From Oculina patagonica (lineage: Eukaryota), in assembly GCF_052425735.1 (NCBI RefSeq), contig NC_135770.1, positions 8,990,001 to 9,054,000 on the forward strand: 64,000 nucleotides of DNA, in the 5' to 3' direction. This document shows positions 6,701 to 58,896 of the stretch, one piece after another. Position numbers and translations under genes: made by a program. Below the pieces are notes generated by a model that worked only from the letters and a program-made list of their open reading frames with translations, searched no databases and was not told the origin of the DNA. How positions within the stretch are numbered: the stretch's first letter is position 1; every line of letters starts with the position of its first letter.

Positions 6701-8793
6701 TAAATCAATGTCTTTCACAGATGATTACAGTTACCCGCGGTCAGGCCATAGGCAGGGGTCTGGTGTCCTTTGGATTTACGGCGACTCGCACAATCGACGG
6801 TTCTTCGAATCTCTTCAAGGACGGCAGCTATGCACTCGTGTATTCAGGGCGTGTTATCACACTGATGTGTGGGTCTACTGGTTAGATGCGGTGATCTCAA
6901 ACGAGATTGACCTCAGGTATTAGAATTATTATTAACTGCCTTTTTTAAAAAAAAAATATCTAAATTTCCTTTAAGTTCATTAGGAACTAAAGGGACTGTG
7001 TCACGGCTGAGTGAAGTTTATTTTATTTAGTTTTGCCAAATACTGTACTCGCTATGAACCTAATGTTTGCAAAGGAATAAAAATGGCTAACGTGTTACAT
7101 CGTTGTTGCCACCCATAGAAGAGATCCTTTGGGAGAATCGTCGTCATACTCCATGCGCTCAGTTACGTGTGACTTGCACATTGTAACCTCAAAGGAACTT
7201 CACTGGTCTGAATTTGGCAACAACTGTACACGCGTTAGCCGAATTTTGTCTATTATACTTGCATGGATCTAAATGACAAAACCATAGCTTCAATGAAACC
7301 AAATTTGTCTCCCGGGCGTTATAATTTAAAGTTAAAAGCAAACAAGATTTACTCCGAAAACTGTTCAGACTAATAGTATTTCTGTAACCCATATCGCACT
7401 CCGTTTAAATCTTCGTCACTTTTGGGCATCCGTACGTTCTTTTGTATTTGGTCTGTTATTGAAATGTTCCTTCACTGTTTTACAAGGTTATTTTTATATT
7501 CAACTGAATTTGATGGTCATTTTCCCATGCCTAAATTTAGCTAAAACCCGTGATACAGTCCTTTTAATGACTCGATCGGTTGTTGGTGTTTTTGTTTGCA
7601 GTCACGGAGGTAATGATATTAACATAACACGAATATTGGAAGAGCTCCGACAAGTCGTGACTCAGCCTTTAATGGACCAAGACAGCGCTTTGGTGCTAAA
7701 CGCTGGGGTTCACCTGTTAAAGAGCACAAGCTTTAGAAATTATCAGAAGATCATCAAAGGTTTTGTTCGACTTTTAAGGGATAATTACCGAGGAAAGGTG
7801 GTATGGAAGACAATACCCTCCCTCGGCAAACAGACCGAGTTGTACACTGGTTGTTCCCGACGCTTTCACACTGAACAGGTAATGAAAACTGGTAAAGTTA
7901 GTAAAAACTAGTATAACTAGTAAAGCTAGTTATAATTTCATTTAGGGAACACGAGACAAAACAAAATGAACCAATCGGGACTCGATACAAAGCTACAGAA
8001 CCGGTACCAAGCGCGGGAAAACACGAAACCGGTGCCAAGCTCAGAAAAAAACACAACTGGCACAAATAAAAGAGCGGGAAGAACTGCAACCGGCGCGGTG
8101 CCAAGCGCGGGAACCATGCGACCGGTGCTAAGCGCGAGAAAACATGCAACCGGTGTCAAGTGCGGGAAACATGTAACTGTCACAAAGAGCGGGAAAAATT
8201 GCAACCGGCGCGGTGCCAGCGGGGAAAGGACGGTAAGGGGAAAAGAGGAAAAAAAGCGCGAAAAAAACGCAACCGGTGTCAAGCTCGGGAAACACACAAC
8301 TGACACAAAGAGCGGGAAAACCTGCAACCGGCGCGGCGCCTAGCGCGGGAGACATGCAACCGGTGTTGAGCGCAGAAAAACATGCAACCGGTGTCAAGCG
8401 CGGGAAATATGCAACCGGTGCAGAGAGCGGGAAAAACTGCAATCGGTGTCAAGTGCGGCAACCATGCAACGGGTGACAAGGGGGGGGGGGGGGGCAAAAC
8501 ATGCAACCGGCGCCGAGCTCGGCAAAATCCCCTCCCTTTTCTTCTTTTTCCCCTCTTCTCCTTTACCAAACGCTAGACTCTCAACTTCATGCTTACTGTT
8601 TTTTTTTTCTTTGCAGAGAATCAAATTGTTCAACGCCTATGCATTGAAGAAAATGTGTGAAGCTGGTATCCCTGTGCTGGACGTGTATCAAATCAGTGCG
8701 GCATACCCCCAAGGCACTATTGACGACATTCATTATCCACACTCTGTGTTCTACCCGGCAGAGGACGCCCTGGAGAGATACTTTACCACGTAA
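3723..8793 (+). CDS. NXPE-family-like SGNH acyltransferase/esterase, paralogue 1 (~465 aa, 6 coding exons)
   Basis: Exons 3723-4230, 5206-5334, 5756-5866, 6721-6916, 7602-7878 and 8617-8793 all have GT-AG borders and join in frame (1398 nt). The protein has an N-terminal hydrophobic segment, an Ig-like region (FGGDAW..D.ENGTY), a GDS motif (IYGDSH) and DxxH (DDIHY). Confidence 0.8.
4384..4917. mobile_element. PIF/Harbinger-like MITE
   Basis: TIR GGGACAGTTC...GAACGGTCCC with internal inverted GGGGCTGGTGGGATT. 3-bp TTA on both sides. Confidence 0.7.
6556..6668. repeat. Short foldback element / MITE core
   Basis: TGTAGCGTCTCTGATTGGTTGTT pairs with AACAACCAATCAGAGACGCTACA. Confidence 0.7.
7995..8527. 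repeat. Intronic minisatellite, ~28-30-bp unit
   Basis: Degenerate tandem copies of GCGCGGGAAAACATGCAACCGGTGYCAA in the last intron of paralogue 1. Confidence 0.9.
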
Positions 8794-9511
8794 CCTCTGT
8801 CGCGTTGCCATTCTAATGGCCAATAATACTTGACTGTAAAACAGGGCTCGACAGTTTCAAACATTGCGTTTATAACTGCTGATTCATCGTTTTCGACGAC
8901 GTTTTAGGAAAGGTTAAAAACATTATAGTTCTGCAAGTCCAACACCTATGCAACTATAGCGAAAAATCTCTTAAGCATGCCCTCTAATTTCAGCCCTCAA
9001 ATTCCTCCAACACCCCCCCCCCCCCGACCCTCCTCCAACCCTCTACAAGACGGCAAACGAATACAACTTGCATTGTAAACAGGGTATTCATCAACTGCAT
9101 TTTTTTGTTAATTTTTGGAAGAGATGTGTTATTAAACAAAAATAAACATTAGACAGTTTATTACATCTTATATAGCTTACATCTATTACTTTTCATGTGC
9201 TTAGCTGATTCATTAATTTCTGTAGTGCTATAAAAACTAGCTGATTCATTAATTTCGCTTTCTTCTCGCGCGAAAGTGAAACAGAAAAAAAAAGAATAAT
9301 TACTGTAATCTTCTTTTATTGCGCAGCTCAAATGATATTCAGTGGCTTTAGCTAATAATTTTGCAGTGCTGTATTCTTATTTTAGAACAACGTTATTTTA
9401 TCGCCTGGCAAAGATTTTGCCTTCAGCTTTACCTGGTACACACAAAAAGAGGTTTGCTTAACTTTTACATAGATTCGTTCACCTCTAAAACCCTTCGTTG
9501 ACTGTAGAGTC

Positions 9512-9953
9512 TATACCTGCCAACTCTCACGCCTTGGGCATGAGTCTCAAGCCTTCGAGTTGAAAACTTCGATCTCACGCCAACTCACGCTTACCAACCA
9601 ATTTCTCACGCCTAGTCGAAAAATGTGAGTTTTTGCAACCAAAAACGACACATTTTGGAAAAAAAAATGTAATCTCAAACCAGTGTGAGAAAATAAAACT
9701 CCATGTAAAATGAGTTAATGGCGATACCTTCCCCGAAATGACAGAGTTTTGACGAAAAAAAGCATTGGGAACGAGGTCGTGTTTAGCAAAACATGTCCAC
9801 GTACTGGGATCGGTCCGGAGATGTTCGGAACGTCTTCGGAATATTTTGGACGTCTTCGGAAAACTTCGGACATTGTGGTATCGTCTTCGGAAATCCTGGC
9901 ACTCTCAGGATAAAAATCTCACGCCTTTGACCCAGGAAAAGTTGGCAGGTATA
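9512..9953. mobile_element. MITE with 6-bp TSD
   Basis: TIR TATACCTGCCAACT...AGTTGGCAGGTATA. AGAGTC at 9506-9511 and 9954-9959. Repeated TCTCACGCC motifs inside. Confidence 0.75.
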
Positions 9954-10009
9954 AGAGTCTGTGTTGCTCCCGTATTAGCAGAGCTCAGTTAACTCCTTTT
10001 TACGTGATA

Positions 10010-10190
10010 AGTAGTATTTCTACTACTTTCCCCTGGATGAAATGCTAGTCCCCGCAGGGTTACCCCCAGCGTTTAACTATAATTACACCTGGTTTGTCCA
10101 AGACAGAAACACGATGACCCCACCCAGGGCTCGACCCGAACAGTTAAATCCCGAGTCCAGACATGTACTGACCATTAGGACACTGCTTGA
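10010..10190 (-). mobile_element. Degenerate tRNA-derived SINE
   Basis: Shares GCAGGGTTACCCCC and AGGGCTC.ACC.G.AC blocks with the copy at 62270-62560 and is the reverse complement of the SINE at ~13905. Confidence 0.55.
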
Positions 10191-11362
10191 GTTACAAATG
10201 GTTTGAATAAGTGTTTTATTATAACAAAAACTCGCCTAGAGAAACAAAGCGAGACTAATGAATACCTGCGCTAGCAGCTTGACCTGTTTCATGACACCAT
10301 TTTACATGTGTGGCAATTGTTCAAGCGAGCCATGCATGAAAAATGAATAACACGAGATAGAATCACAAGTTCACGCCTTCCAGAAACGAGCCACTCAAAA
10401 CGGAATTCAAAGGAAATAATTGTGAAGATCTTTGAAGCGACAGTTGTAAGTACGTTCTATTATTTTATACGTAAAAACAACAGAAACCATGAAAATTGTC
10501 TTTCTTGAGGTCTCAAAACATAATGTTGCTATGAATATTTGAATACAACATCGTTTCGGCGTAGCAAATGTGAAAAACAATATTGTCGTACTGAAGAATA
10601 CAACATTAGTCAACCAGAACATAAAATGGAGACTCATGTCAAACCATTTACTTAGAAAGCTTTCACCGTTTTCGGCCCCAAGCTGAAAATTTTAATACTC
10701 CTTCCAGATTGCTATATTCTTCTCTTAATACACGTTTTAAAAATTTGGATTTACATCTTGACCCTATCACTTAGTTGATGGCCATCACCTGTTTGAGGTT
10801 TGTGGACAAGCTATTGATATAAATAGAATAGAATAACGAGAATGTAGACAAAACAAGAAAACAATGATAAATTTTTAAGGCATGCATAAGAGTTGTCAGA
10901 GTGAGGACCTCGATTTAGAAGCGAAAGGCACAATAAGTGTCAGTCCTGAGGCCCCAGTCCTGCACAGTTTAATGTGACAAATATGGTCTTACTGTATCAA
11001 GATCGAACAACAAACACAGTGTGGAAACCATTATTACTGTGCCGGTTAACCTGTCAAATGGTTGACAATAACCAAAGGTCGGGCATGAAGGGTTTCTTTT
11101 AGGGGAAAATGTGTAACCTGGGTTGAACTCGGTGAATCCTAAAACAGTGTGACCATGTTGATGTACTTGGAAAAGTATGTGATTAAATTTATTATCTTTT
11201 CAATTTCATCTACAGAGTTTCCCCAGGAACTGGAATCTGTGTCAGAACAAGAAAGGGGATCTTAAATCTTCTGCAATCAGCACCTTTAATGTCTCCGCGG
11301 CCTTAATTAACATAAACCAGTTTTAAGGAACTTTGAAATGTCTGTTCTACTGGCATTTTGCA

Positions 11363-14300
11363 ATGACTTCCCTGTCAATAATTACTCTTATCTATTTTAT
11401 TTTGTGTTCGGAAGCTAAAAAATCCTTCGAAAATGAAAGGTTGAACTACAGAAAAAATGTCGTGGATTTCAAGCTGGCCTGGTGCCAAACGCGCTTGCAC
11501 AGATACGACTGGAAAGACGTGATTGGTCATTGCTTAAAGGACGTGCCGTGGGGCGCAGCACCGCTGGACGGGAAGTTTCAAACGCGGGCTAGCAAAAGCT
11601 ATGTCAAACACATCGACATTAAACCTGCGGGATTCTTTAGCAAGATTTATATTCAGTCTGTTTCGGTGGATAACCTTAATAAGACTTTTGGAGGAGACTC
11701 CTGGCGGGTAGACATTCATGGCCCGTCTAATGTGGCCGCTACAGTATACGACAAAAACAATGGATTGTACGAGGCTGTGTTTCTAATAGAGGAGTCTGGG
11801 CTCTATACGGCAGAAATCGTCCTGGATTATTCGTTGTGCGAGGGATTCAAAGATCCACCTTTAGACTGGTTCATCAGAGGTAATACAAGCGAAAATCGTG
11901 CGTTATATTTTTTCTGTATGTAAAACTTTATTTGTTTTATGAACTCAATATGGCTATCTCTCTCCCCAGGCTGTCGTCACGGTTCATTTCAGCCTCAGGG
12001 GAGCCTGGGTAACAGGAATCACGATTTCTTGCAGGAGCCTCTGGGAGGAGGAAGAATCACGTTTACTGTTCCTACGTCATCAGTGATGATAGCTAAGGGT
12101 GAGATTACATCTTGATGCTTCAACATAAAGTATCACTATGTAACCAAATAACTGTCGAAAAAGTCCAGTATCTATTAGGCCTTTCTCGATTATGCTAGCA
12201 TTTTTTTCGGCATTTTTGGGGAAAACGAGCATTTTTTTCGTGTTTTCTTCAAAAAAGAATTGCTAGCATTTTCTGTCACTTTTCAAGACTGTGATCCAGA
12301 TTTTCAGCACTCAGAACTCAGAAGGATAAATAATCCTAAAGTTTCACAATTTTGATTACATATTTATTGTTTTCTGTCTGTTTCGACTGTTTTATGCGTT
12401 TGTTATTTGTATTGTGTTGTGTTACTTTGTGTGTGTTTTTTTATTTTTTATTTTTTTTATAAACAAACAATTATTAAGTATCACCTGTTGTTGATATGAG
12501 CATATAATGTGAAAGTTTGTACGTTTTTTTGAAATAAAATAAAGCATTTTTGGAAATCAAGTGGCATTTTTTAAGAAAATCAGGCATTATTTTAGCATTT
12601 TTTTGGCTTTATGCGAGAATTTCTAGTAGCATGCCAGTTTTACTAGCATAATCGAGAAAGGCCTAGTATCTATGCATCTACTTTAGTTATTTATTTACGT
12701 TTGACCCTCGGCTTAGCCGAAATTTTCATAGCAAAACAACTGCTTGCAATTGGCTTCTAATGTTTGGAAATATGTTGGTCTCAAAGTTCACTTCGCTTCT
12801 GGGAACAGAATCTGTCTAGAGAGAAGTGTCTGTGCATACTTTTTTTGCACCATCCGGACTTTTATAAATAACATTTCACATGTGAGCTTTGGCTATTGTT
12901 AACCACGTATAAAAGTTTAAACATAACCGAATGTACCAATGTTTTTATCTGTATGTTGTTTAGAACTCAACGCTTTCAAAGCAGTAAGCCAAACTGCCTG
13001 CCGGGAGAAGTGTAACCTGTTGGTAGATGGATACGGAGCCTGGGTAGGAGAGCAATGGCGGCCATATCAAACAGGTAATAACAACACGAGAAAAATAACT
13101 AACAAAGTCACCAACCTCATTTCCAGGTCTACTCCGTTCCAAGATGGCCGCTGGCCGCCATTTTGAAAACTCGTCGCCGAGATGACCCCGAGGACGAGGT
13201 TGGTACGTCACAAGTTGGTGAATGACTGCTCCACCAAAACCAAGAAAAATACAAGTTTAGCAAAACAAGTGTTAAGACTTAAGAGACTTTGCTTTTCTTT
13301 CTCTAACCAGGTTCTTCCATTAGCCTCGGTAGATCCGGACATCAACAAGGCCGCGGTGTATTATGGGTTTACGGCGACTCTCTTAACCGCTACTTCTACG
13401 AGTCTATCCTGAAACGACCTCTATGTTGGCAAGTGTTCCGCGCCTGTTATCACACAATGCTGTGGGTGTATGTATTAACACAGTCCGCTAAAAACGAAAT
13501 GAATTTGATGTTTGGACGGAAACCCATCAACATTCCCAGGATCCTTTACGAACTGCAGAGCGTTGTCACGCGCTCTGATATGGACCAGGACAGCGCGCTG
13601 ATCCTGAACGCGGGCGTGCATCTACTGAAGAGCGCTAGTTTTTACAATTATCAAAAAGTGATCAATGGATTTATTAGCGTGCTGAAGCGATATTACCGAG
13701 GAACGGTTATCTGGAAGAGTACCACTGCAATCCACGATCAGAGAGAGTTGTACAGCGGCTGCTTCAGGCGATTTCACACGGAGCAGGTGAGATTAGATTA
13801 ATCGTAGATTGTTTTTCAGGTAAGCGCAATGATTGGTGAGTAGGATGCGCTTACAGTGAAATCCCGATTCACATGGCAACCAAATGATTCGCAACCCTTA
13901 ATTTGGGGAGGGTGGTGGTGAAATGGCTGTCGCGATCCGCATCGAGATGTCCCGGTTTGAGCCCTGGCCGGGGACTTTGTGTTGTGCTCTTGCGCAAGAC
14001 ACTTGACTCTTACCGTACAGGTGCCTCTCTTCACCCAGCAGTACCAGTGGCATGCAATAACTTGCATCCATTCTACTGCTATGAGGGCTATACATTACAA
14101 AACCCCAAATCGGTTCATGCTGCAAAAGTCTGAGTTAATCCCCGGCAGCGATGACAAAGCTATCGATTTGGCTCCCCCTTTCGAATACAAATATTCCTCC
14201 GAGATAAGAAAAGCCTGTAATTTCAGTACCTGCGTGATTTGAGAGCCAGAAACAGTCTGATATGCTAACTTTTTGCGGACACAATTTCGATCAGACATTC

Positions 14301-14567
14301 TTTTGTTTAGTGTTCGTCTATTTTACCTATTTCATCAATTCTGAACAATTATTCATTATCTTAACACTCAATATGCTGTTTTATTTTTAGCGTATACAGC
14401 TCTTTAACGCTTATGCTAACTGGGCGATGTGCAAGGCTGGCTACATAGTGCTGGATGTGTACCCAGTTACTAGCTCCTACCCTGGAGGGACCTTGGATGG
14501 CGTGCACTTTAGAGATTCAGTGTTTTATCCCGCAGCAGACGCAGTGGAGAAATTTTTCCAAACTTAA
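11363..14567 (+). CDS. NXPE-family-like SGNH protein, paralogue 2 (~469 aa, 5 coding exons)
   Basis: Exons 11363-11879, 11970-12098, 12964-13074, 13311-13786 and 14391-14567 join in frame (1410 nt). Exons of 129, 111 and 177 nt match paralogue 1. Motifs FGGDSW, VYGDSL, DQDSALILNAGVHLLKS and LDGVHF. Confidence 0.8.
12176..12665. mobile_element. hAT-like MITE
   Basis: Perfect TIR TAGGCCTTTCTCGATTATGCTAG and perfect 8-bp TSD GTATCTAT. Confidence 0.88.
13905..14140 (+). mobile_element. Degenerate tRNA-derived SINE
   Basis: A-box-like TGGTGAAATGG and B-box-like GGTTTGAGCCC, followed by a core TGTGTTGTG.TCTTG.GCAAGACAC. Confidence 0.6.
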
Positions 14568-16246
14568 CAAAAGCTTGTGTTGGATCCAAGCAAAGTCCCA
14601 TTATAATAAAAAAGATTCCGTCACGCGAGGACTTGATCATAGCGTGGAGTGCAATGCAAGTGAATTTGTCACGCTTCCCGCGTGATCACGCAACAGAAGT
14701 TACAAATTAACGAAAGTATGATACGAATCCTTGACTTATTTTTATAAAATATGGATTGATATACGATGGAAATAGCTAAAAATGTTCCGTTACATAACTA
14801 AAACTGTTCCGTCACATGATCATAGCATCGAGTGCAAAGAAAGTGAATTTGTCACGTTTCCCGCGCAATCACGCAACAGAGGAAATTTAAATTACATGTC
14901 AACCAAAGTAAGATACGAGCCTTGTCTTTTTATTTTAGAAAAAAAAAATGGTTTGACAAAGGATGAAAATAACTAAAAACTGTTCTCGACAAGATGTTAT
15001 TTTCCTGTGATGTTAGTTCCTGTTCGTCTTCATTTGAGTGGATTTTCGTTACAAGGAAGGAGGAAAGTTAAAAATAAATATGAGTTAAGTTCAGACAAAA
15101 CCAAAGGGTTTGTGATTGACAATAAAGAAAAAGCTGGCTCCACGTGTTTTTTTTTTTTATTTCTTTATTATTTCTATTGTACCCTCTGCATATAATTATC
15201 CATGTCTCAAGCTTGCTAAATTGACATCACCTCTACATATGTATAATTTTCATATTATATGTTCGTTAATTTCTATTTTGTTAAAATTGAAATGCGATAC
15301 GTTGTATCTTGCCAAAATATAATAGACTAACGTATTAAAATAATAAAATCCTTCAACAAGCCCTATTATCTCTAGCCTTCTACACAGTCGCTCTTTAGGT
15401 TTGTCACGTAATCTTTCCTTTAAGGGGAAAAGAGTTGCGTGACGATTGCGTGACGAGTCCTAAGAGGGTCAGCCTTGGAGGCTACATAATCACAGCCCAG
15501 CCCTTACCCCAAACCTCCCCCTCCCCTCCCAGAGCACGCTAATAATTTTAAAAGTGTGTTTTTTCTGAAGTTTGAAGAAAACGTCATCAAACTATAAAAA
15601 AGAAGAAGTTGAGTGAAAAAAAACCAAAGAAGCCCAAGACACAGACCAACCAAACCACCCCGGCGATTGTTTTGTTTTAGTTTGATTGGCTAAGAAATGC
15701 GAGTTTTTAGCCTCCTGAGGTAGTAATGCAAAACCAAAGCAAACGCAATTTACCTTCGACACTCAAGTGAAAACCGCTCTAAGATCACCAAAAGTAAACC
15801 ATGCATATGACGTTACAGTTGATAAAGAATTAACGGACCCGCTGTATACCCCAGCTGAAAAATGACGAGTTTTAAAATTTACTGATAGCTACAATACTAA
15901 CTGATTGCTGAGAAATCACCGAAAATTTAACTTATAACTGAGTACTCATTACATCACTCCCATCCAGACCCTTTGGTAGGAGTGGGGTGGGGGGGAGGGG
16001 TCTTGAACCGAGAATTTTTTAGTTCACCACGTTATAACTAAAAACTAAAACATCCTATGGATCTATACTGCAAGCAGTTCTACCTTATCTTTAGTATTTC
16101 TCTAGAATAAGGCTATATAAACTCCATATATTAATAAGCTATAGTCTTTTGCACAGTATAAAATTGCGTGACATAAATCATATGCTCATTGAAATACGTC
16201 ACGCCAGTCACGGTGTAACTACTGCAAGCTTTTGACAAAGTAAACT

Positions 16247-18040
16247 TTAGAGTGCGTACACAAACACACTCAAGAAAATGCTGCAAAACAAGATGGTGAC
16301 GGTCACCTCAGTAAAACAGCCTTCGGCTTTCACTTCTGGCTTGGGTGCTTGTACTGTGGTGGGAGCCTCTCCACTCACTAACTTGTCAGGGTATCGCCGC
16401 AACATGTCCAGAACAACGCCATTGGTCCAGCCAAACCCGACCTGAATGCTGTACTCACCCCCTCCCCCTGGGGCGCCATGCACGCTCACGTTGAACTTCT
16501 CAAACATGTGTCCTGTAGAACTCCAGGCCTTGTAGTTAGTAGAGACCCAATTCTGTGCGAATTTCAAGGCTTCTTGTTTCAGCTCTTCACTGCTGGACTG
16601 AGCAAGACCTTCTATGAGCATGTGCTGCAACGGGGGCCAGGCATTTGGGAAATCCCACTGCTGACCGGATGACGCTAGGGAAGTCGGAAATCCCCCTGGG
16701 TAATCGAGAACTTTGAGTCGCTTTAGCGTGCGGAGAACAAGGCTTTCTCTTGTCGTGTTGCCCTGATGAACTCCAGCCCAGAGCGGTACCACACTTGAAG
16801 CGTAAAAATAATGCCTTTTCTGTTTTGATTGTCGATCATAATCGAGCCACAACCCCATTTGATTATCCCACAGAACTGCCTCGATAGCAGCCAGTCGCGC
16901 CTCTGAGAAATTCTTGTACTGATCTGCCTTAGCTGTGTTCCCGGCCATGCGAAAGAACTTCTCTAGAAGTTTTTCGTTGAGGTAGAGGACACTGTTCAAA
17001 TCCGTTGGTACAATTTGCCTTGTCCGGGTGCTACTTAGGGACCCCTCCCCTGAACTCGTACGGTTAAACCACCGGGTAGAAAAATCCCAACCACTCTCTG
17101 CAGCGGAAGCTATGTCTTGGTACAAAGCTGGCCTGGCGTCTTCGGGTACTTCTTGAGCTGTATGAAAATCTTCATAGTAAGACTCAGGCCTTGGGGTGTC
17201 CATATTAGCTGCGTAGATCGACAGGTTGTATTTCCCAGACGAGACCTCAACTTCAACAGCGCGATTATCCTTCCAGAAAGTGTATTCTTTCTCAAGGTCA
17301 TCTAAAATTGACTTCACGTACTCTTGGTCGCCAGTGTAATTGAGATAAAGGTCTACAATTGGGATCAAAAATGGAGGTTGACTTCGGTTCGTGTAGTATA
17401 TCCGACCGCCGTTCGGAACGAACCCATAGGTCTGCACCAACTGAATGAAGTTGTCAATCATTCCTTTGACGGTGTCCTTCATGCCGCAAACGAGCAAACC
17501 GTCTACGACCCAATACGAGTCCCAGTAATAATATTCGCGAAATCGTCCACCGGGGACAATAAATGGATTCTTAACCAAAATCAGGGAAGATCGGGCAGGG
17601 TTTTGGCGTGCTTCATCGCTGATCTTCCTTCCCAGCTTCTTCCATAATCCATTGAGCTTTGAGGCGAAATTCTTCAGATTAGCGTCCTTTATACGGTCAA
17701 TAAACTCGGGATTTTCTTTCCAATCGGGCGGGGACCACTCCTCCAAATCGTGTCCTACGGGATAGAAATTTTCCTTCACGAAGTTGATCACTTGTTCCTT
17801 GGAAGTATTTTGTTGTGGAAGAGCTTGGAAAGCCTTTAAAACATCCGCTGCATCCTTCTGGAGTCTCATGTCAACAAACGTCTTGGAATCGTTAAAAATA
17901 CGGGCCATTTGAACCGTGTCTAGAAGTTTTCCATGACAAAAGATCTCACTGCTACACGCATACTTCTCGGCTGTTACTTGATTTATGGTAAGGACAAGAA
18001 TAAACGGCACAAGGCAAAGTACACACTTGTACACCTCCAT
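16247..18040 (-). CDS. TREH: Trehalase (GH37) with signal peptide and C-terminal hydrophobic (GPI-like) tail; single coding exon
   Basis: 597-aa ORF containing both trehalase signatures (PGGRFREYYYWDSY, QWDFPNAWPP), plus DSKTFVDM, RSQPP, PRPESY, AAESGWDFSTRW and GGGGEY..Q.GFGWTNG. Probable 5'-UTR intron at ~18056-18162. Confidence 0.97.
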   Translation of the reverse strand: MEVYKCVLCLVPFILVLTINQVTAEKYACSSEIFCHGKLLDTVQMARIFNDSKTFVDMRLQKDAADVLKAFQALPQQNTSKEQVINFVKENFYPVGHDLEEWSPPDWKENPEFIDRIKDANLKNFASKLNGLWKKLGRKISDEARQNPARSSLILVKNPFIVPGGRFREYYYWDSYWVVDGLLVCGMKDTVKGMIDNFIQLVQTYGFVPNGGRIYYTNRSQPPFLIPIVDLYLNYTGDQEYVKSILDDLEKEYTFWKDNRAVEVEVSSGKYNLSIYAANMDTPRPESYYEDFHTAQEVPEDARPALYQDIASAAESGWDFSTRWFNRTSSGEGSLSSTRTRQIVPTDLNSVLYLNEKLLEKFFRMAGNTAKADQYKNFSEARLAAIEAVLWDNQMGLWLDYDRQSKQKRHYFYASSVVPLWAGVHQGNTTRESLVLRTLKRLKVLDYPGGFPTSLASSGQQWDFPNAWPPLQHMLIEGLAQSSSEELKQEALKFAQNWVSTNYKAWSSTGHMFEKFNVSVHGAPGGGGEYSIQVGFGWTNGVVLDMLRRYPDKLVSGEAPTTVQAPKPEVKAEGCFTEVTVTILFCSIFLSVFVYAL

Positions 18041-18762
18041 TTTGCAATTTGATGGCTGAAAGAAACCTCGCGTGATATTTGCCAGATGTTGTCAATGTAA
18101 TTTAATTTCACCCCGATTTTATTACACTAGCGTGACCGTGAGGTCACTGCGATCCAACATACCTTGCATTTCAGCTGTAATCCCAAGTAGATCGTTTCAC
18201 GCGTTGGATATATTTTGTGTAAAATAAGTTTTTTGGGGGAAATTTTTCGAAAAATTTTTCGGGCCCGGCGTTCTTTTTGTAAAAAATTTTTTTTTTTAAT
18301 TATTTTTTAAAAAATTAAATTTATACCCCTTTTTTTTTTTTTACCAACCAAACTATTTTGAATCTGATTTGCACACAGTGTTTGTTTTAATTCTAATTAA
18401 AGTTTAAGTATCACGTGGTCATACTTCTTAGAGAAGCTGACTGTGCTCTCTACTTTTCTAATCCGGTCCTAGAGGATTTTCCTGAGTTTGTAATAAGGCG
18501 GGAAAAGTAAAAAAAAAAAAAACTTTTAAAATTAGAGTAGTGTTGAAGTGAATTTCTCATGTGTTAAACTTCTTGATACCTAGAAAAAACGACAAATGAA
18601 CTTCACTGTTAAAGTTCAAAAAAATAAACAAATCAGGGAACAAATTGAACAAATTTTGTGACGTCTTCTCATGTTCCTCTTTGATTCTGCATTTCCGGTT
18701 CCGGTTGCGCTGAAAATCTGTGCATGCGCAGATGTGTGTTATGGGTTCGTACTCGTGGCAAT

Positions 18763-49798: not shown

Positions 49799-50220
49799 CC
49801 TTTAGGTTACTATTGTTAGCGGTTACTAATTTTAGCGATTTTAGTGAGTAGGGCGAAAATCGCTAACTTTAGTACTCGCTAAAGTTGTCTAGATCAAATT
49901 TAATTCGCGTTTAATGTAAGTAACTCCCCTCCCCCCCCCCCCCCCCCCCCCATACACACTAAAAAAACCACAAAATTTAATATTTTGAAAAAGTTTTTAA
50001 AAAATAGATGCCTGACCCATTTTCCGACATTTGTATTGACTTTTTTCTTTTTGGCAATGCAAATGTTCGTAAAATTTCAAGTGAGTTTGTTCTTTTACTG
50101 AACATACTGACACGATAACGCTAATTTTTTGGAAAATCGCAAAATTAAATAGTCGCTAAATCTTGCTCAAAGAAAATCGCTAAAAGTGATTAGTAGCCGC
50201 TAACAGTAATAACCTTAAGG
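49799..50220. mobile_element. TA-flanked MITE
   Basis: TA|CCTTTAGGTTACTATTGTTAGCGG...CCGCTAACAGTAATAACCTTAAGG|TA. Confidence 0.75.
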
Positions 50221-51307
50221 TAGTTTTTGCGCTTTGTTATATTTAGCAAATCATCGTATAGAGTCAGCTATTTTTACTTCTTCTACCTTATAATTTTATT
50301 ATGGTACTATTATATCAGTTCCATAACCGCCTCTGACAACTTAAAGCGGGAAGTTGTACACATTGATTCAAAAAATAAAATCCTTAATGTTTTATTCAGG
50401 ATGTTTTTTGATGGCAGTATAAAATGCGGTGTGGTATATGATATTTTCTTCTGAACTTGTAGAGCGGGTTTAAAGCTAAATATCGACAGCCATTATGACA
50501 TGTCTTTCGCTTTCTTTTAATAATTGAGCGCTGGATTCTGATTTACTGGGTTTCCGATATTTTTTTCAGTTATATGAATTTTCTTGTTACAAACAATCCT
50601 ATATATACAAAAAATTGTGTTTGAGCAAAAGCTTGTGTTTGAACATCGTTCTCTTTTAATTGTCCTGTCTTTATTATCGTGAGTCGCAAATTAATATTGC
50701 CCAAAATGACCAGAAAAGTACACAGTTTTAAACTTGGTTTAATGTAATATCATACTTATATTTTATTAATTCACCTTGTTTGCGATAACTATAAAAATAC
50801 ATTAAACATCCAAAAGCTATATAATCCTAAAAAAATTAATAATCTTAACCTTTTTAATTCATTTGCTCTACCTCCTGTATAATAAAAATTATAATACACT
50901 TCGTTCAAATGCGTGTACCTTAGTGCCAACCGATTTTCAATTACATAGGAAAATGAAATTCAAATGTATTTCGTTTTTCATTTTTCTTCCCCGCTGTAAA
51001 AATGGAATTTAAGTCCTTTTTTCAAAATTCTTTTTTTTTTCACCCATGAAAAATGACATCCGACTTTCATTTTCGTTTTTAAATGTTCCTTACACGACGG
51101 AAAACGAAATTCGAATTCACTTTATGATTTTTGTTTTTCGTTTTTCTATATCTAAAAAAACGGATTTGAATTTTCTTTTTGTTTTGTAGTTTTCGGATGG
51201 AATTTGGAAAACAAACTGAATTTAACATTCGTTTTTCGTTTTTCCTTTTTGGCCAAAAGCATTGAAACTGACAATCTTTGTTTTGGCGGGAATATTTAAG
51301 AAACAAA

Positions 51308-53827
51308 ATGGCGGCGTTAGAAGCTGTTCTTGATGAAGACTTTGTCCGCCGGTTTCTTGTCGAACAGAAACATACTTTTGAAGAGCTGGTCACTGAAATC
51401 AAGACTCGATATCCGAATCTAAAGGGCTGTAGTTTAAGAAGCGTCAAAAGGTTTTGTAATCATCGGGGAATCAGAAAAAGAATGCCGGTTGCAGATGGAG
51501 TGCTCGACATCGCAGTACGAGCCGCCGTATCAGAGGTAAGGATGTGTTCCAAATTTAGAATAACAGTTATGGATAATTATGTATGTATAACTACAATTTA
51601 CTTATCCTTATTCGGATAATTTCTATTGCTTTCAATTTGCAATCTCTTATTCCCTTAACGGTGCTGTCGTCAAGTTATACTATTCACGATAGGATAACAC
51701 AACGAGCTCAATAACACTTTCAATTTTTAAACGAACCAAAACTTATGCATATCTTCAAAGTTCTTAAAGTTTTGTTTTCTTATTCAATTTAAAAATTATC
51801 TTATTCCAAGTTTGTTACAATTATGTTGAAAAGGGATTTTGTGGAAGTTATCTATATTCATTGGTAGTGGCGTCAAATTTGAGCTAATATAATTTGCAGT
51901 AGCCTGCAGAACAGGCGGATTATTTTTCGGGGGGATTTTGCGAGTCGCGCGAAAATAATCCGCCTGCTCTGCAGGCTAAATTTGCAGGGAAATTGTTACC
52001 TTTAATGTAGGGGCGTCATGTAAAGTGTTAGGCAAGGGCGCAGAAAATCAAAGGCCTCTTTTTTTGATTTTTCATGCGCTGAAAACTGTTCTCAATTCAT
52101 TGTAGGTGGGTCCTGTATTTGGAAGAAAAATGATGAAAGGATATCTAGATATGCAGGTTCAAGGTACATTCGCATCAGAGAGGCGTGTAAGAGAATCTCT
52201 GTCTCGGGTTGCTCCCATTTACCATCATCGTCGCCAAAGAGGTGTTGAAAGGCAAATCAACCCGCAACCATATACTGCTGAATACCATGGCCACAAGCTA
52301 CACATGGACCAGAACGAGAAACTTGTGAATTATGGTGTTGTCCATGTTTGTGCAATTGACGGGTTTTCTAGGTACATTCCTTCTTTTGCTTGCATGCCCG
52401 TGAAGAATAACGTCCTCATCTACGAACATGTTTACAGGTGGGTAGAGTTTCGTATTCGTAGCAGTGAAAACATTGCTTTTTTGAATCAAACTATCTAGCC
52501 TGTGTGTTTATTACCAAGGAAACGAATAGGAAAGGGTGCTGTAAAAAATATACAAAAATTGGAAAAGGAAATTACTGAGCAGCAATTTGACATCAGTTCT
52601 CTTTCTTCCTTTACACCCTTATCCCTGACTTGACCATCTTGTACGCGGTATTTATACCGGCGCTCACTAAAATATATCTTTGTGTCAATAGTGACCTCTA
52701 ATAATTTAATTTATGATACAGAAAAGCGGTGATAGAGGACTGCCTTCCAGATCAAGTACGAGTTGATCATGGCCGTGAGTTCTACTTGACCCTCTTTGGA
52801 CAGGAGTCACTGGCCTCCCTAAGGACAAATACACAGCGAGATCCTTACCGACAAACACAGTCGAAAAAGGTAAGCATGACTGTAAGTTTAATACGCATTG
52901 TCATTTAAGTTTGTTTCATTTGCAAACTAATTGGTCCACTCTTTTCCCTCTCTTGAAGAATCTTAGAATTGAGCGTTTTTGGGTGGAAGTCAATGCTCGT
53001 GTAAATTATCCGATTAAAAATGCCTTGAGAGATATGGAGCAAAGAGGTGTTATCGACATGGAACTTGACTTTACTAAGTTTTATGTCTCAAGTGTCTCAC
53101 TGAAAGTAGCAAGTGTAGGAATGAAACGAACAGTAAATGCTTGGAACCATCACCCAATCCCAGGTATGACTACTCAAGGTACACCAATACTGTAATATTA
53201 GCAGGGGGCATGGTTAAGGGTCTTAAGGTTAACCCGGCTCTTCCCTTTCGCTACTTGTAGCTCTTCATCACTAAACGCACAAAGTTTTTGTTTGACCCTG
53301 TTGACAAAATAAGAGAAGAATCACGTTTTTGGAGGATGAGAAAGCTATCATGTGTCATTCCTCTTTTTTGGCGCTCTCTACCCCCTTATTTTCCACTCTC
53401 CGTCTAATCAAACACAATCATTATTTTCAGTAGCTTATAAAACAGCCATAGAATTCACGTAAAATCCAGTGTTACCACTAAATTCACTACCCCCATGACC
53501 TTTTTCCTTTCTATTGCAGGAGTTGGGACACCAGTGCACTTGCGCAATGGCAACTTCCAAGGACAGAGAGTACTCGCTAATCAGATTCCCACAAGCATGG
53601 AAGCTGTCACTGCTTACGAAAATCTTGGTGGTACACTCACGGTTTTCCCTACTTTTGGCATTGACCCCTTAGCCGAAAATGCCGAACTTCAGGCTACACG
53701 AGAACAGCGCTTTAGTAATGAAACAAATGAAGAAGCCATCTTTGGAGAACTTGTGAATGGCAATTCTACTTCTTTTGAGCAGGCCATACAAAGATATGCA
53801 AACATTACAATTCAACTTCTGACATAA
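51308..53827 (+). CDS. DDE integrase-like transposase (406 aa, 5 exons)
   Basis: Exons 51308-51535, 52106-52437, 52722-52869, 52959-53163 and 53520-53827 join in frame (1221 nt). N-terminal HTH-like region (SLRSVKRFC, FGRKMMKGYL). Predicted triad LHM-D-QNEK, RV-D-HGREF and NLRI-E-RFW, with 38 residues between the second D and the E. Confidence 0.88.
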
Positions 53828-54079
53828 ATCCAACGTAGGTTTATTCCATCAGATGTTAGTTTGAATGCAATGGCAGAAACAAACATACAAGATATACTTT
53901 GGTTGACATCGCAGTTTTTTATATGTAATATTAAGGTTTGGTTAACATTAACATTGTTTTAAAAATGAAGCTAGGCATGTGGCTTTTAGCTGTTAAAAAG
54001 CCTTTACTGTTTTAACGTGATGTGAAAGACATATTCCTTTAACACAACAACAAGTAACGTTTTCTGATTTCGTCTGTCT

Positions 54080-57000
54080 TTAGCCAACTCTAGAAAAACC
54101 GTTGTTAAGCTTTGTGAGGATGTCAAATCCTTTTAGTTCAATTGCTACAAAATCAACTTCATTTCTGCATTTTGGACAACCTGAATTATTGGTTGTCCAA
54201 ATTTGAATGCATCCCTTACAGCCTATTACTGAGTCACAACAAGTACTCACTACAACTGGTGGTTGTATTGTTTCTTTGCAAATAATGCATTCAAAGCAAT
54301 CTAAAATCTCTTTCACAATGGCATTCTGTACTGCTCGTACAATGAAAAAATTGGCATTTAGTTTATCTTCAACACATTTTGGCAATTCTTGATGGATAGC
54401 TTCTGCCACTGCAATTTTCACGGCTTCTTTGATATCTTGCATGTTAACATCTACAGAGGACACAAATTATAAACAATGTCTTAATTATAGCTCATTCATA
54501 GTGTTAGATTGATAGCAGACTAGTATGCTGTAATCAATGTTTTCCCACAGTTATATGTGTATTTCCAATTGCGTGTATGTCGTGAGCATGGAAAAAAGTT
54601 TTGTATTTGATTTTTTGGTAAAATGCATTTTTTTGTATAAATAGTATCACAGTTCATTTTGTTTATTCAGTTTTCTTGAAATTATTTACAAAATTTTGAA
54701 CAACAATAAAGTCTTTGTGGCCAAGAACCAAGAAATTGAATCTTGTCAAATAAAACTGGTCAGAGATTACTCATAGTGACTACATGTACTGTACGTCATA
54801 CCTTGGGATTGTGCATTGGTCACATGTTCTTCATGTTCATCTTTAATAACAACTATTTCATCAGCTTTTTCTTTTGTTAAGTCTATAGCATAGACTTTAC
54901 GAGACGCTGATTTCCAAAAGCTTAGGCCTGTGGGGTAAAGACATTATAATTTAAAATAGTTTTAGTACAGGAAGGTATTCACAAATTTCACGTCCCCTTG
55001 TTAACCCTCGAACGTACAAGCGAATTCATACCCCCACCATTCTACAAGGGAGAAGGGGGGGGGGGGGGGGGCGGTGGTGGATGGAATCTCTCCCCAGAGT
55101 TTTCGTTCTGTTCAGGCGCAGCGAAATAATTTGCCGACATTGAGAAGAAAGCCTGTAGCTCACTCTACAAGAGGAGGCTATTTTTGTTGGCTGAGATGTC
55201 ATTTGACGCCACATGACGTCATTAGAGCCGCCATCTTGGATCCAACATCTTAGATTTCACAAATAACGGAAATTGATACAAAATCAAGCCAGAATGATTA
55301 TTGAATGTTAAAATTAAACAAATCGTACAATTCCGTTTGAAAAAAAAATAAAGAAAAATGTTAAAAATGACGATTTTTGGCAAGATCTGCTTGTAATTAT
55401 GGCATTGCCAAGGCAACGTCAAATATCATGGACACATGGTTTCCATATCAAAGTTTCCGCAAGGGATGAATGAACAGCTACTGAAAGTTTCACCATTGTT
55501 GAGAAAATCCTCTTTTCAAAATTTTGAAAAAACCTTACCAGGGGGTGGAATCCCCCCCCCCCACCCTTGTATGCCCGTCAACAGGTTAAAAATATAAATA
55601 CTGGCAATATGGACTTTACTGGGTTGCTTAGTACATCTCAATACAAACATATTCATTCGAGAACATCCAAGTTATAAAATACTCAACTTCTGAAAGATAA
55701 CCTCTCTGCTCTACTATTTGTAGGCAGCTATTTAAAGATTACGTGATGGGCTCTCGGCCAATGAAAAGGAAGAAATATACATCTACTGATAATACAAGTT
55801 ACCTCTAGTCCCGTTTGAATCCTCGAAAGGCAGCCCATTGGCACTGACAAGTTTTATTTCTTCTATACCTAGCTCCTCCTTGCATTTCAGCGTGATGTTG
55901 GGAACATTTGCGGTATCTTCTGTAATCAGTACATAAATTTGCCTTGTAGGTGTCTTAACTTTTCCTTTTTCAAGTGATGCCAACGTTACCTTCAGTGAGT
56001 ATCCACTTACTTTCACTCTTTTCGTAGAATGGGGGAGGTTAGAAAAAACGGAGCTAGAAAAAAAAATACAAAGTAATTAGAAGAGCGTCACATTGGCTAA
56101 TTCTGCTAGCAATGTCACATTTTTCATCTAATCAGTTAAAATCGGTTTTTAGTGAAACTGAAATGCATCAAATTAATCATCCGCTTGCTACAGTCGTGCT
56201 TTTTTATTTTCATAAAAAACAATGAAAATGCCGGGGTTGAAAAAAAAATTCCCAGACTCCCGTAATTTCTCGATCGACGGCCCTTTTAGTTCGATCGATT
56301 TGCGCGATATTTCTTGAAAGAAAATTTCAAGCCAAAATTTTACTTTGAGAAATTTTCTGCACATTCGTGCACTGTTTACATTACCTTTGTTGATTTTTGT
56401 TTGTGCTCTCTTGTACAAAGTGACCGTTGTCATGGAAAAGCACGTTGGCTCTTTCTTGCAAGCGTGAGAACAGAAGCTTCTTATTGGCTGACGAGTGAAC
56501 GTTACGAAAATAGATTGAAGAGATACATTCTGACTTCAGTAAAAATGTACATCTTTTTCGAAAATCTTAACGGCATATTTTAACCTTTTGCCTTTTGTTA
56601 TATTTTAAGCACTTTCGGGGATTTTTTTCGACGCAAACCAGCGCAATCAAGAAAGGCTTGACCACAACATGCATGCGATTTAACAGCTATAACTGTCTTG
56701 AGATTTAATGTAAATGTTCCCGAAATTTCGACAATCGAAGACTGAAAAAATCAAATGATTATACAAACCTGAACAAAGGAGAATAGTTGGAGCTTGCCGG
56801 TGGAGTACGAAGGCTGGCTGCTCCTTGGTGTTGATTCGACCGGGACGGGGTCCCTTGCACTTTTAGGGTTGTGTCTTTCCTAAAATCTGTAAGGTCAAAC
56901 CGACCATCGCGGTTCGGCCATTCGGTTGCCAAGCCAAACTCCTCCACAATGTGGATTCCTGGCACATCAAACTGAAACGGGTAATCAAATATTTTTTTAA

Positions 57001-57210
57001 ATAAATGTTAAAGTTCCTTCATCAACGGCGTTACATTCCGAGGAACCCGAAAGCACATGCTTGCAAGTTAAAAGCTTTCTCGCTTTATGACTTACCCCAA
57101 ACATTTGAGCCAATCTTTCGGCCGACACTTGAGATTTTTTTCACTCTCCTTTCCTCTCTTCCGTCTCCCTCGCCGGTGAAAAATATCACACAATCTTCTG
57201 AATCCGCCAT
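54080..57210 (-). CDS. Transposon-borne RING-finger protein (~350 aa, 5 exons; exon 1-2 junction ambiguous)
   Basis: Exons 57210-57096, 56971 (or 56958)-56769, 56053-55803, 54927-54802 and 54450-54080. Exons 2-5 join in frame with GT-AG. C-terminal CIIC...STCCDSVIGCKGC...CPKCR. Confidence 0.75.
55004..55585. mobile_element. piggyBac-like MITE in an intron of the RING gene
   Basis: TTAA|CCCTCGAACGTACAAG...CTTGTATGCCCGTCAACAGG|TTAA, with decayed TIRs. Confidence 0.55.
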
Positions 57211-57901
57211 GACCAAGATAGACAGCAGCTAAATACCATTCGCAGCTAAATACAATTCGCACGGTTGGTTGGGTTGGGAAACTGAGGGCAGCATAAGAGT
57301 CTGCCTCATTACGCGGTAATATGTCGTTTCGTGATTGGTTGATATTTCAGGGTATATGTCAGTTTCAATGCCTTTAGCCAAAAAGGAAAAACGAATACCG
57401 ATTAATTTTCAAATTCCATCCGAAAGCAAAAAATGAAAAGAAAAATTCAAATCCGTTTTTTCATATAAAGAGAAACGAAAAACAAAAATCAAAAAGTGAA
57501 TTCGAATTTCGTTTTCCGCCGTGTAAGGAACATTTAAAAACGAAAATGAAAGTCGGATGTCATTTTTCATGGGTGAAAAAAAAAGAATTTTGAAAAAAGG
57601 ACTTAAATTCCATTTTTACAGCGGGGAAGAAAAATGAAAAACGAAATACATTTGAATTTCATTTTCCTATGTAATTGAAAATCGGTTGGCACTAAGGTAC
57701 ACGCATTCGTTCACTCCAGTTTTAACAATGAATTACATTTTATGACTATAGAATATTGCTACAGAGTTGACGAACTCCCTTAACATTACCCGCAGTTAAC
57801 TACTTTTGAAAAAAAAAAATACCCATTCAACACAGCTATAGTGTATTAAATTAAATAAAAGAAAAAAATTAACTAATCGTCTTTTTTAACAGTCTCTAAA
57901 A

Positions 57902-58896
57902 CTAGTTTTCAGTTTCTTCTGCATCAGCGCTTGTCGTCTGTTTTGGTTCCTTGCCTGCTTCATCTTTTTCCATGGTGACCTCAACGGATCTCTTCTGCGG
58001 CAACAAAGCTGGATCACGTGTCGCTTCTATCGTCAGCAGTCCTTCCTTTGACAAACGTGACGTCAATGAGCTGAGATCTACGCCATCGGGCAGCAGAATA
58101 CGACGACTGCAGTCACGTGATCGGTGACCTTCTGACACCTGCTTTCCAGTGATGGTCAACTCATTTCCGCGCATCTGGATCTTGATCTCTTCTGGTTTGA
58201 AACCTCTGAAATCCAACTTGGCCTCAAATTTGTCGTCGTTTGCTTTCTCCTCCACGCGTTTCGTACCCTCGATTACGAGAGCAGCGCCATCTTGGGTAAC
58301 TCGAGATGTCACGCTTGTCGGATCGACACCCTGGGGTAGTTTGCGGAACCTCTTGAACTCGCTTTCCTCGAATCCATCTTCTCTGTCAATTCGATGCAGG
58401 CCATGTAAGGTCACCTTTTCGCTATCAACCTCGACCGAGATTTCTTCTGGTTTGTATTGACCCAGCAGCACAGAGGCGATCTTTACTGATCCCTGATGAG
58501 TTTGTGGGCAGCAATAGTCTCCTACTTGCTGTTCGTAAGCGTTAGCGAGAACGACCTCTCTCCATAGATCGTGAAAAAAATCATAGCCTCTGGGAGCTCG
58601 GTTGAAATAACTGTGATAGGAGGAGAAGAAAAAAAAAAACAATAAATAATTATTTCACAGTGACTTGAATATGCCAAATAAAAAATCATGAAGCAAGGTT
58701 TTCGGTTTAATAGTGTATTAAGAGATTGCGTCCAATGGCGCGATAAGGATCGATGATGAAGAGATTAGGTATTAAGATCTTTTTTTTTAAATTGTTTCAG
58801 ATTTGAACACACCACAACGGCAATTCTAATTTACAAAAGAAATAAAAGGAAATACCTGCTTGGATGAAAGGTTGGAAATCTGAAAACGAGAGCCAT
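57902..58896 (-). CDS. Small heat-shock protein with two alpha-crystallin domains (~249 aa)
   Basis: Exon 1 58896-58856 (MALVFRFPTFHPS) joins exon 2 58610-57902 in frame. Two ACD repeats: YKPEEISV...LPQGVDPTSVTSRV and FKPEEIKI...LPDGVDLSSLTSRLSKEGLLTIEA. Confidence 0.92.

Follow-up and report, generated by a model that had tools for sequence, protein, structure and literature searches.

A gene for a predicted ubiquitin-like/RING protein accompanies an integrase-type transposase in DNA transposons of cnidarians and teleost fishes

Introduction

Transposons of the IS3EU/GingerRoot kind encode an integrase-related DDE transposase, have inverted repeats, generate 6-bp target-site duplications and have been reported from corals, sea anemones, Hydra and fishes, among other animals (PMC6839031, PMC10045372, PMC11934779), and the structure and function of IS3EU were said in a 2025 paper to "remain largely unexplored" (PMC11934779). 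Here we analyse an intact 6.8-kb cut-and-paste DNA transposon that resembles these elements, located at positions 50908-57707 of a 64,000-nt stretch of the Oculina patagonica genome (assembly GCF_052425735.1, contig NC_135770.1, positions 8,990,001 to 9,054,000, forward strand; hereafter the window). Its transposase gene is accompanied by a second gene, hereafter the RING gene, encoding a 350-aa protein with a predicted RING domain.

Published descriptions of IS3EU/GingerRoot give their termini as TA..TA (occasionally TG..CA), with TA..TA said to be constant in IS3EU, and their inverted repeats as 100-150 bp. GingerRoot is described with a single transposase, and fungal IS3EU elements carry alpha-kinase and TET/JBP cargo in conserved gene order and opposite orientation. 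The Oculina element shares with this group its 6-bp duplications, its inverted repeats and an integrase-like DDE transposase that lacks the HHCC zinc finger, but its termini are AAT..ATT, and those of a fish relative GG..CC, rather than TA..TA, and the inverted repeats measure 366 bp here and 2.98 kb in that relative. We refer to it as IS3EU/GingerRoot-like and not as a member, the comparison being one with published descriptions of these elements. No RING or ubiquitin-like partner gene was found in a search of the literature on IS3EU/GingerRoot, Repbase entries lying outside this comparison.

Second genes within the inverted repeats are a feature shared with Harbinger (MYB-like), MuDR (mudrB), VANDAL (VANC) and fungal IS3EU (alpha-kinase and TET/JBP), although none of these accessory genes encodes a ubiquitin-like/RING protein, and the fungal TET/JBP genes shift between superfamilies whereas the RING gene has been seen only with transposases of the Pfam family rva_4. 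Modules of the ubiquitin system do have precedents in transposons: ULP1 and OTU protease domains occur in MULEs and Ginger1, and the RING of RAG1 has E3 ubiquitin-ligase activity. As in RAG1 (Transib/ProtoRAG), a RING module here travels with a DDE transposase, but in a separate gene and together with ubiquitin-like domains, whereas the RAG1 RING is fused to a transposase of another superfamily. This N-terminal RING of RAG1 appears in PMC1131882 and PMC4411706.

An intact two-gene element in the window

The element is bounded by terminal inverted repeats with the same hexamer immediately outside both ends (Table 1). The left and right repeats are 91% identical over 366 bp, with the outer 132 nt 100% identical, and end in AATGCG..CGCATT. 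Both genes lie within the repeats in convergent (tail-to-tail) orientation, each beginning just inside one repeat, with stop codons 253 bp apart. The transposase gene, on the plus strand, has five exons encoding 406 aa without a stop and matches Pfam rva_4, an "integrase core domain" (DDE); inspection of its exon 1 by eye revealed no HHCC pattern. The RING gene, on the minus strand (57210-54080), comprises five exons totalling 1053 nt and 350 codons, with no internal stop and all junctions GT-AG.

Table 1. Coordinates of the element, its two genes and the modelled domains of a Hydractinia relative (P0097); positions are those of the window unless given as residues.
Feature	Position	Strand	Content	Basis
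Left target-site duplication	50902..50907		CGTTCA	same 6 bp immediately outside both inverted-repeat ends
Left terminal inverted repeat	50908..51273	+	366 bp; terminus AATGCGTGTACC	repeat scan
Transposase exon 1	51308..51535	+	N-terminal region, helix-turn-helix-like by eye	open reading frame/splice model; 80% aa identity to second copy (L001)
Transposase exon 2	52106..52437	+	first catalytic Asp, HMDQNEKL	Pfam rva_4; 92% aa identity to L001
Transposase exon 3	52722..52869	+	second catalytic Asp, RVDHGREF	splice model
Transposase exon 4	52959..53163	+	catalytic Glu, IERFW	Pfam rva_4, E=4e-8, 33.6 bits, over cut-off
Transposase exon 5	53520..53827	+	C-terminal extension, stop codon	splice model
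RING gene exon 5	54080..54450	-	long helix, RING, C-terminal helix, stop codon	Pfam, AlphaFold, Foldseek, profile
RING domain proper	54167..54289	-	conserved Cys1 to Cys8	counted from sequence; conservation; pLDDT 96-97
RING gene exon 4	54802..54927	-	last strand of predicted ubiquitin-like domain 2, LSFWKSASRKVYA, then acidic linker	splice check, family alignment
RING gene exon 3	55803..56053	-	most of predicted ubiquitin-like domain 2	splice check; fold from P0097 model
RING gene exon 2	56769..56958	-	remainder of predicted ubiquitin-like domain 1, then low-complexity linker	40% identity to Hydractinia P0097 residues 41-91; fold from P0097 model
RING gene exon 1	57096..57210	-	start codon, beginning of predicted ubiquitin-like domain 1	open reading frame and splice check; donor kept in L001
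Right terminal inverted repeat	57357..57707	-		repeat scan
Right target-site duplication	57708..57713		CGTTCA	perfect 6-bp match to left hexamer
P0097 beta-rich domain 1	residues 1-79			model
P0097 disordered linker	residues 80-120			model
P0097 beta-rich domain 2	residues 121-212			model
P0097 long helix	residues 226-273			model
P0097 RING	residues 274-327			model
P0097 C-terminal helix	residues 330-340			model

Linkage of the RING gene to one transposase type

Relatives of the RING protein were retrieved by sequence search. With the RING exon as query, a word-index search returned ten short relatives from environmental assemblies, and an exhaustive search returned 513 proteins at E≤1e-3 and 26 at E≤1e-10. 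Several dozen of the retrieved proteins also have the N-terminal region or an FWK..RK.YA motif. A word-index search with full-length P0097 recovered only P0097 itself, and one with the family alignment, covering 8000 candidates, recovered at least 11 proteins and little that was new. Full-length relatives (320-380 aa) come from Hydractinia symbiolongicarpus (many loci), from ENA assemblies and from the teleosts Melanotaenia boesemani, Xyrauchen texanus, Alosa alosa, Eleginops, Epinephelus, Zoarces and Knipowitschia, and bear public names such as "uncharacterized protein", "RING-type domain-containing protein" and "RING finger protein 141-like". Two longer relatives of the RING exon, P0024 (501 aa) and P0032 (712 aa), have two matched stretches each within another architecture.

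Linkage of the RING gene to an rva_4 transposase, or to a remnant of one, was seen in each of the eight lineages examined. The two genes are tail-to-tail in six cases (the window, L001, the copy on L002-L007, L008, Hydractinia and Xyrauchen) and head-to-head in three (Melanotaenia and the ENA sequences L019 and L020), and the linkage survives a change of orientation. The contigs closest to the window are scaffolds of the Tara Pacific coral-associated metagenome. A complete second copy, on the 345-kb contig L001, has both genes, both inverted repeats (terminus AATCCG) and a GTCCAC duplication, with exons 79-82% identical to those of the window; the splice sites of the RING gene are common to both. 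A truncated copy on Tara Pacific scaffolds (L002-L007) retains a single inverted repeat, the 3' end of the transposase and a RING gene that is decaying and has two stops, and on L008 only the transposase 3' exon is detectable.

Multicopy elements were found in coral-associated contigs, in Hydractinia and in teleost fishes. The Hydractinia genes are tail-to-tail at four of four places, about 1 kb apart, and five insertions have perfect 6-bp duplications (CAGGTG, CTTCCC, ATATAT, GTTAAG and ATTATT); these copies are ~99% identical, and their termini (AATGCG..CGCATT) carry the same terminal sequence, AATGCGTGTACC, as the window. In Melanotaenia boesemani the genes are head-to-head at four of four places, on four chromosomes (L010-L013, ~2853-18666 in each), within a 15.8-kb element with 2.98-kb perfect inverted repeats and different host genes outside. 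The four copies are 99.9-100% identical, with termini GGTCCGGG..CCCGGACC (GG..CC) and duplications GTGCAT and ATAAAC; the L010 duplication matches at 5/6 positions and that of L013 is ambiguous. In Xyrauchen the rva_4 coding sequence lies downstream of the RING gene and is unannotated. Outside close copies the identity of the RING exon is flat at ~25%, and a co-phylogeny of RING protein and transposase would therefore resolve nothing.

Selection on the RING gene was estimated from the window and L001, in which neither gene has a stop, by Nei-Gojobori counting exon by exon, with bootstrap 95% confidence intervals (CI) on the ratio of nonsynonymous to synonymous substitutions (dN/dS). The RING gene (336 codons) gave dN 0.109, dS 0.635 and dN/dS 0.17 (CI 0.12-0.25), and the transposase (402 codons) dN 0.049, dS 0.393 and dN/dS 0.125 (CI 0.08-0.18). 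The RING gene is kept by purifying selection.

These results bear on the possibility that the gene is chance cargo, whether a one-off capture or a host gene standing beside a domesticated integrase, for which the frequent capture of host gene fragments by GingerRoot elements and the public annotation of relatives as "uncharacterized protein" or "RING finger protein 141-like" might speak. It is contradicted by the element bounds, with both genes inside the inverted repeats and target duplication, by linkage in 8 of 8 lineages in two orientations, by near-identical multiple copies with differing flanking host genes, and by selection, and we consider it barely tenable. An initial annotation of the window had proposed that the RING protein is transposon-encoded and a regular part of its element, and had reasoned that homologues occurring mostly as unlinked single-copy host genes, or a dN/dS near 1, would speak against this; the homologues are instead multicopy and transposase-linked in the lineages examined, the ratio is low, and both proposals are supported. 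The RING gene is very probably an integral gene of the element, and it has travelled with the transposase in cnidarians and teleost fishes.

A divergent all-cysteine RING

Exon 5 contains the cysteine pattern C-x2-C-x12-CC-x5-C-x2-C-x10-C-x2-C, and the domain contains no His. Three residues upstream lies a ninth Cys that relatives do not conserve. The canonical RING spacing, C-x2-C-x(9-39)-C-x(1-3)-H-x(2-3)-C-x2-C-x(4-48)-C-x2-C, is departed from in that ligands 3 and 4 are adjacent (x0), a Cys replaces the His, and five residues precede Cys5. In family alignments the eight RING cysteines are invariant or nearly so, as are a Gly before Cys5, a Trp three residues after Cys6 and a Pro after Cys7; the residue preceding Cys2 is aliphatic across the family, and an Arg follows Cys8 in the window's clade. 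The aliphatic residue, Trp, Pro and Arg occupy what we take, from the structures of c-Cbl and RNF4, to be contact positions for the ubiquitin-conjugating enzyme (E2) or E2-bound ubiquitin, and these predicted E2-contact positions are conserved in the family. A scan of the exon pieces against NCBIfam gave nothing useful.

Searched against solved structures, the family profile matched PCGF5 (8e-12), UHRF2 (6e-9) and RNF8 (7e-9), as well as RING2-BMI1, UHRF1 and RAD18. An AlphaFold model of the window's exon 5, built with a 24-row alignment, has a mean predicted local distance difference test score (pLDDT) of 86, rising to 96-97 over the RING, with a long helix ahead of it. The best Foldseek match over the full length of exon 5 is the coiled-coil and RING of RNF8 (124 columns, E=8e-5), followed by TRIM37, TRIM69, RAD18, RING1B/BMI1, UHRF2 and BRCA1, with a probability of 1.0 for the RINGs of RNF8, TRIM37, RAD18, RING1B and BRCA1. 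A RING fold is predicted for exon 5, and the Pfam match (below cut-off), the family profile, the conserved cysteines and the high-pLDDT model together confirm that the cysteine pattern is a variant RING and not a chance arrangement. The initial annotation had been right in reading here an eight-cysteine, His-free pattern preceded by a helical segment, and the lack of a predicted RING fold, which it had named as an objection, does not apply. A motif-like block that it had pointed out in the same protein, LVSANGLPFEDSNGTRG|LSFWKSASRKVYA, is also real, at the junction of exons 3 and 4, but it is not a mere motif, since in the model it forms the final strand of ubiquitin-like domain 2, described below. 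The block is interrupted within a Gly codon by a phase-1 intron, present also in the Hydractinia gene, and in the alignment of relatives the W, K and A of its exon 4 part are invariant and the F and R nearly so.

The succession of long N-terminal helix, RING and C-terminal helix is that of RNF8, RAD18, RING1B-BMI1/PCGF5, UHRF1/2, BRCA1-BARD1 and TRIM37. The protein differs from these C3HC4 proteins in that all of its eight ligands are Cys, Cys3 sits directly beside Cys4, and two extra residues precede Cys5; sequence identity to them is only 20-26%. An eight-Cys, His-free RING is also present in CNOT4, whose C4C4 RING is an active E3 ligase with C-x-C at ligands 3/4; the RING described here has CC followed by x5, not C-x-C, and the structure and profile searches gave no specific similarity to CNOT4.

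On these models the RING protein is likely to be a working E3 ubiquitin ligase. It might instead be a non-catalytic adaptor, its ubiquitin-like domains, helix and RING serving to bind proteins, to dimerise and to deliver the transposase to the ends of the element or into the nucleus, as does the Harbinger MYB-like protein. The RING is non-canonical (adjacent Cys3-Cys4, no His, Pfam score under cut-off), the transposase is small at 406 aa, and the matches include BMI1/PCGF and BARD1, dimeric RING partners that are catalytically inactive. However, a pure adaptor would not need the predicted E2-contact positions that are conserved family-wide, and no DNA-binding domain was detectable with Pfam in the window protein or its relatives; we find an adaptor role improbable.

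Predicted tandem ubiquitin-like domains

The full-length architecture was obtained from the Hydractinia relative P0097, folded with a 16-sequence family alignment, the window protein itself having been searched and folded exon by exon. The P0097 model comprises two beta-rich domains (pLDDT 67-89), a long helix, a RING and a C-terminal helix (Table 1), and Foldseek matched its N-terminal part to the ubiquitin-like domains of USP7, ISG15, the tandem domains of OASL and di-ubiquitin (E 8e-6 to 1e-3). These regions match no Pfam family in the window protein or its relatives. Exons 2-3 of the window gene are ~40% identical to P0097, and on the strength of this identity the two beta-grasp ubiquitin-like domains predicted there are carried over to the window. 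The 350-aa protein is accordingly modelled as two ubiquitin-like domains, a helix of ~50 residues, an all-Cys, C4C4-type RING with adjacent Cys3/Cys4, and a short C-terminal helix. Its ubiquitin-like pair sets it apart from RNF8, which has an FHA domain, and from UHRF1, which has one ubiquitin-like domain together with TTD, PHD and SRA domains. A viral fold search in BFVD matched only giant-virus ubiquitin-like and RING proteins.

The ubiquitin-like domains are highly divergent, with 20-30% identity between lineages, as a surface facing the host might be. The protein could be a counter-silencing effector, the first suggestion of the initial annotation: a ligase that tags host factors repressing foreign or repeated DNA, so that they are degraded and the element stays transcribed. 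The herpesvirus protein ICP0 offers a functional analogy, as a RING E3 borne on a mobile genome, although its architecture differs and the similarity of the RINGs is weak and generic (profile match to the herpesvirus RING 1chc, E=0.0015). That a mobile element should carry a RING E3-like protein at all fits such a role, as does the anti-silencing cargo of other DNA transposons, such as the TET/JBP genes of fungal IS3EU. VANC of VANDAL elements is likewise an anti-silencing cargo. Against it, the dN/dS of 0.17 between diverged copies gives no sign of an arms race, the same gene occurs in cnidarians and teleosts, which argues for a conserved target, and no SUMO-interaction or other targeting motifs were identified in the RING protein. 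Low dN/dS and conservation from cnidarians to fish would speak slightly more for a conserved target than for a host-specific arms race, and we regard counter-silencing as clearly unlikely.

Possible role in transposition

The explanation we favour is an element-borne ligase, with two ubiquitin-like domains, helix and RING, that acts where transposition takes place, on a target that is conserved; taken whole, it is a serious candidate, a little short of an even chance. The protein would dimerise via its helices, like RNF8 and RAD18, recruit an E2, and ubiquitinate a target conserved between cnidarians and fish. Complexes of the integrase type are highly stable and have to be removed before gap repair. 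Because of this stability, and because hosts as different as these retain the gene at low dN/dS, the favoured target would be the transposase of the element itself, its strand-transfer complex or the neighbouring nucleosome. Ubiquitination may then clear the complex and allow repair of the 6-nt gaps, with the ubiquitin-like domains as putative docking modules for the transposase, for the proteasome/p97 or for a deubiquitinase. The assignment of the target to this class is the weakest step, and we offer it tentatively.

A negative autoregulator, the second suggestion of the initial annotation, would overlap with this explanation: the ligase would send the transposase to the proteasome and so limit transposition and damage to the host, predicting that loss of the gene raises activity. 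The element invariably encodes both genes, which in the window begin just inside the inverted repeats, in keeping with such a role, yet nothing in the present data separates an autoregulator from a positive cofactor. We judge negative autoregulation quite improbable.

A stronger form of the favoured explanation would make the RING protein an obligate transposition cofactor for a whole clade of animal integrase-type transposons, ubiquitinating the transposase complex or the chromatin of the target site. This is rather unlikely; if true, a cut-and-paste transposition machinery would for the first time be shown to include an E3 ligase encoded by the element.

Several observations weigh against an E3 ligase acting in transposition. 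The window protein scores under the curated cut-off for Pfam zf-RING_2 (E=1.2e-5, 25.9 bits against 27.3), as do most relatives for the Pfam RING families; the adjacent Cys3-Cys4 would be an unusual zinc ligand geometry; and one subfamily is without the Arg after Cys8. The full-length fold comes from a relative ~40% identical in exons 2-3, whose model has a mean pLDDT of 70.6. Helix-flanked dimeric RINGs in general resemble those of chromatin and DNA-damage proteins, and the similarity identifies no substrate. Finally, Selaginella GingerRoot and fungal IS3EU are described without a RING gene, so that the gene is not universally needed by this transposase type.

Significance

That a ubiquitin-like/RING gene is kept with its transposase from cnidarians to teleosts suggests that the element depends on the host ubiquitin system during its life cycle, whether to clear the integration complex, to select or mark chromatin, or to evade silencing. 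Dozens of "uncharacterized" and "RNF141-like" gene models of fishes and cnidarians are transposon genes, not host genes. The elements of Melanotaenia and Hydractinia look recently active, given copies 99.9% identical on four chromosomes in the former and ~99% identical in the latter, and these copies are tractable material that could seed a two-component transposition assay.

Additional features of the related contigs and the window

Over its outermost ~40 nt, the inverted repeat differs little between the window (50908-50950) and a Hydractinia copy (L014, 4385-4436), with the first 12 nt identical and ~85% identity thereafter, while the transposases are only ~55% identical. This similarity points to a strongly constrained binding site or to horizontal transfer. 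On the same Hydractinia contig a copy at 4659-9730 (duplication CAGGTG) is nested in the inverted repeat of a copy at 4385-14518 (duplication CTTCCC), giving the appearance of a tandem pair.

On L008 an inverted-repeat end at 375-451 points away from the adjacent RING gene, and the element's own repeat was not found on that side; the misdirected repeat probably belongs to a neighbouring element. Downstream of the truncated copy, at ~8200-13200, scaffolds L002-L005 contain genes with HEPN_DZIP3 and zf-CHY domains, of which the shorter L006-L007 have the HEPN_DZIP3 part only. These genes, which represent other ubiquitin-ligase-related modules, are probably host genes.

The window has a GC content of ~38-40% and zero N, and no second copy or fragment of the element was found within its 64 kb. 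A scan for bacterial promoters and terminators, which is not meaningful for a eukaryotic element, found sites no more frequent than in shuffled sequence. Intron 1 of the transposase gene contains a 27-nt inverted repeat (51900-51978; 96% complementary, 25-nt loop). Intron 3 of the RING gene contains a long G run (55047-55084), matched by a C run at 49925-49951, ~1 kb left of the element; the intron sequence around the G run is without repeat elsewhere in the window. To the right of the element, a minus-strand gene (57902-58642) encodes a small heat-shock protein of 246 aa in which Pfam recognises two Hsp20/alpha-crystallin stretches (E=1.6e-25), and its stop codon lies ~195 bp from the right end of the transposon, which places the element in or near the 3' flank of this gene.

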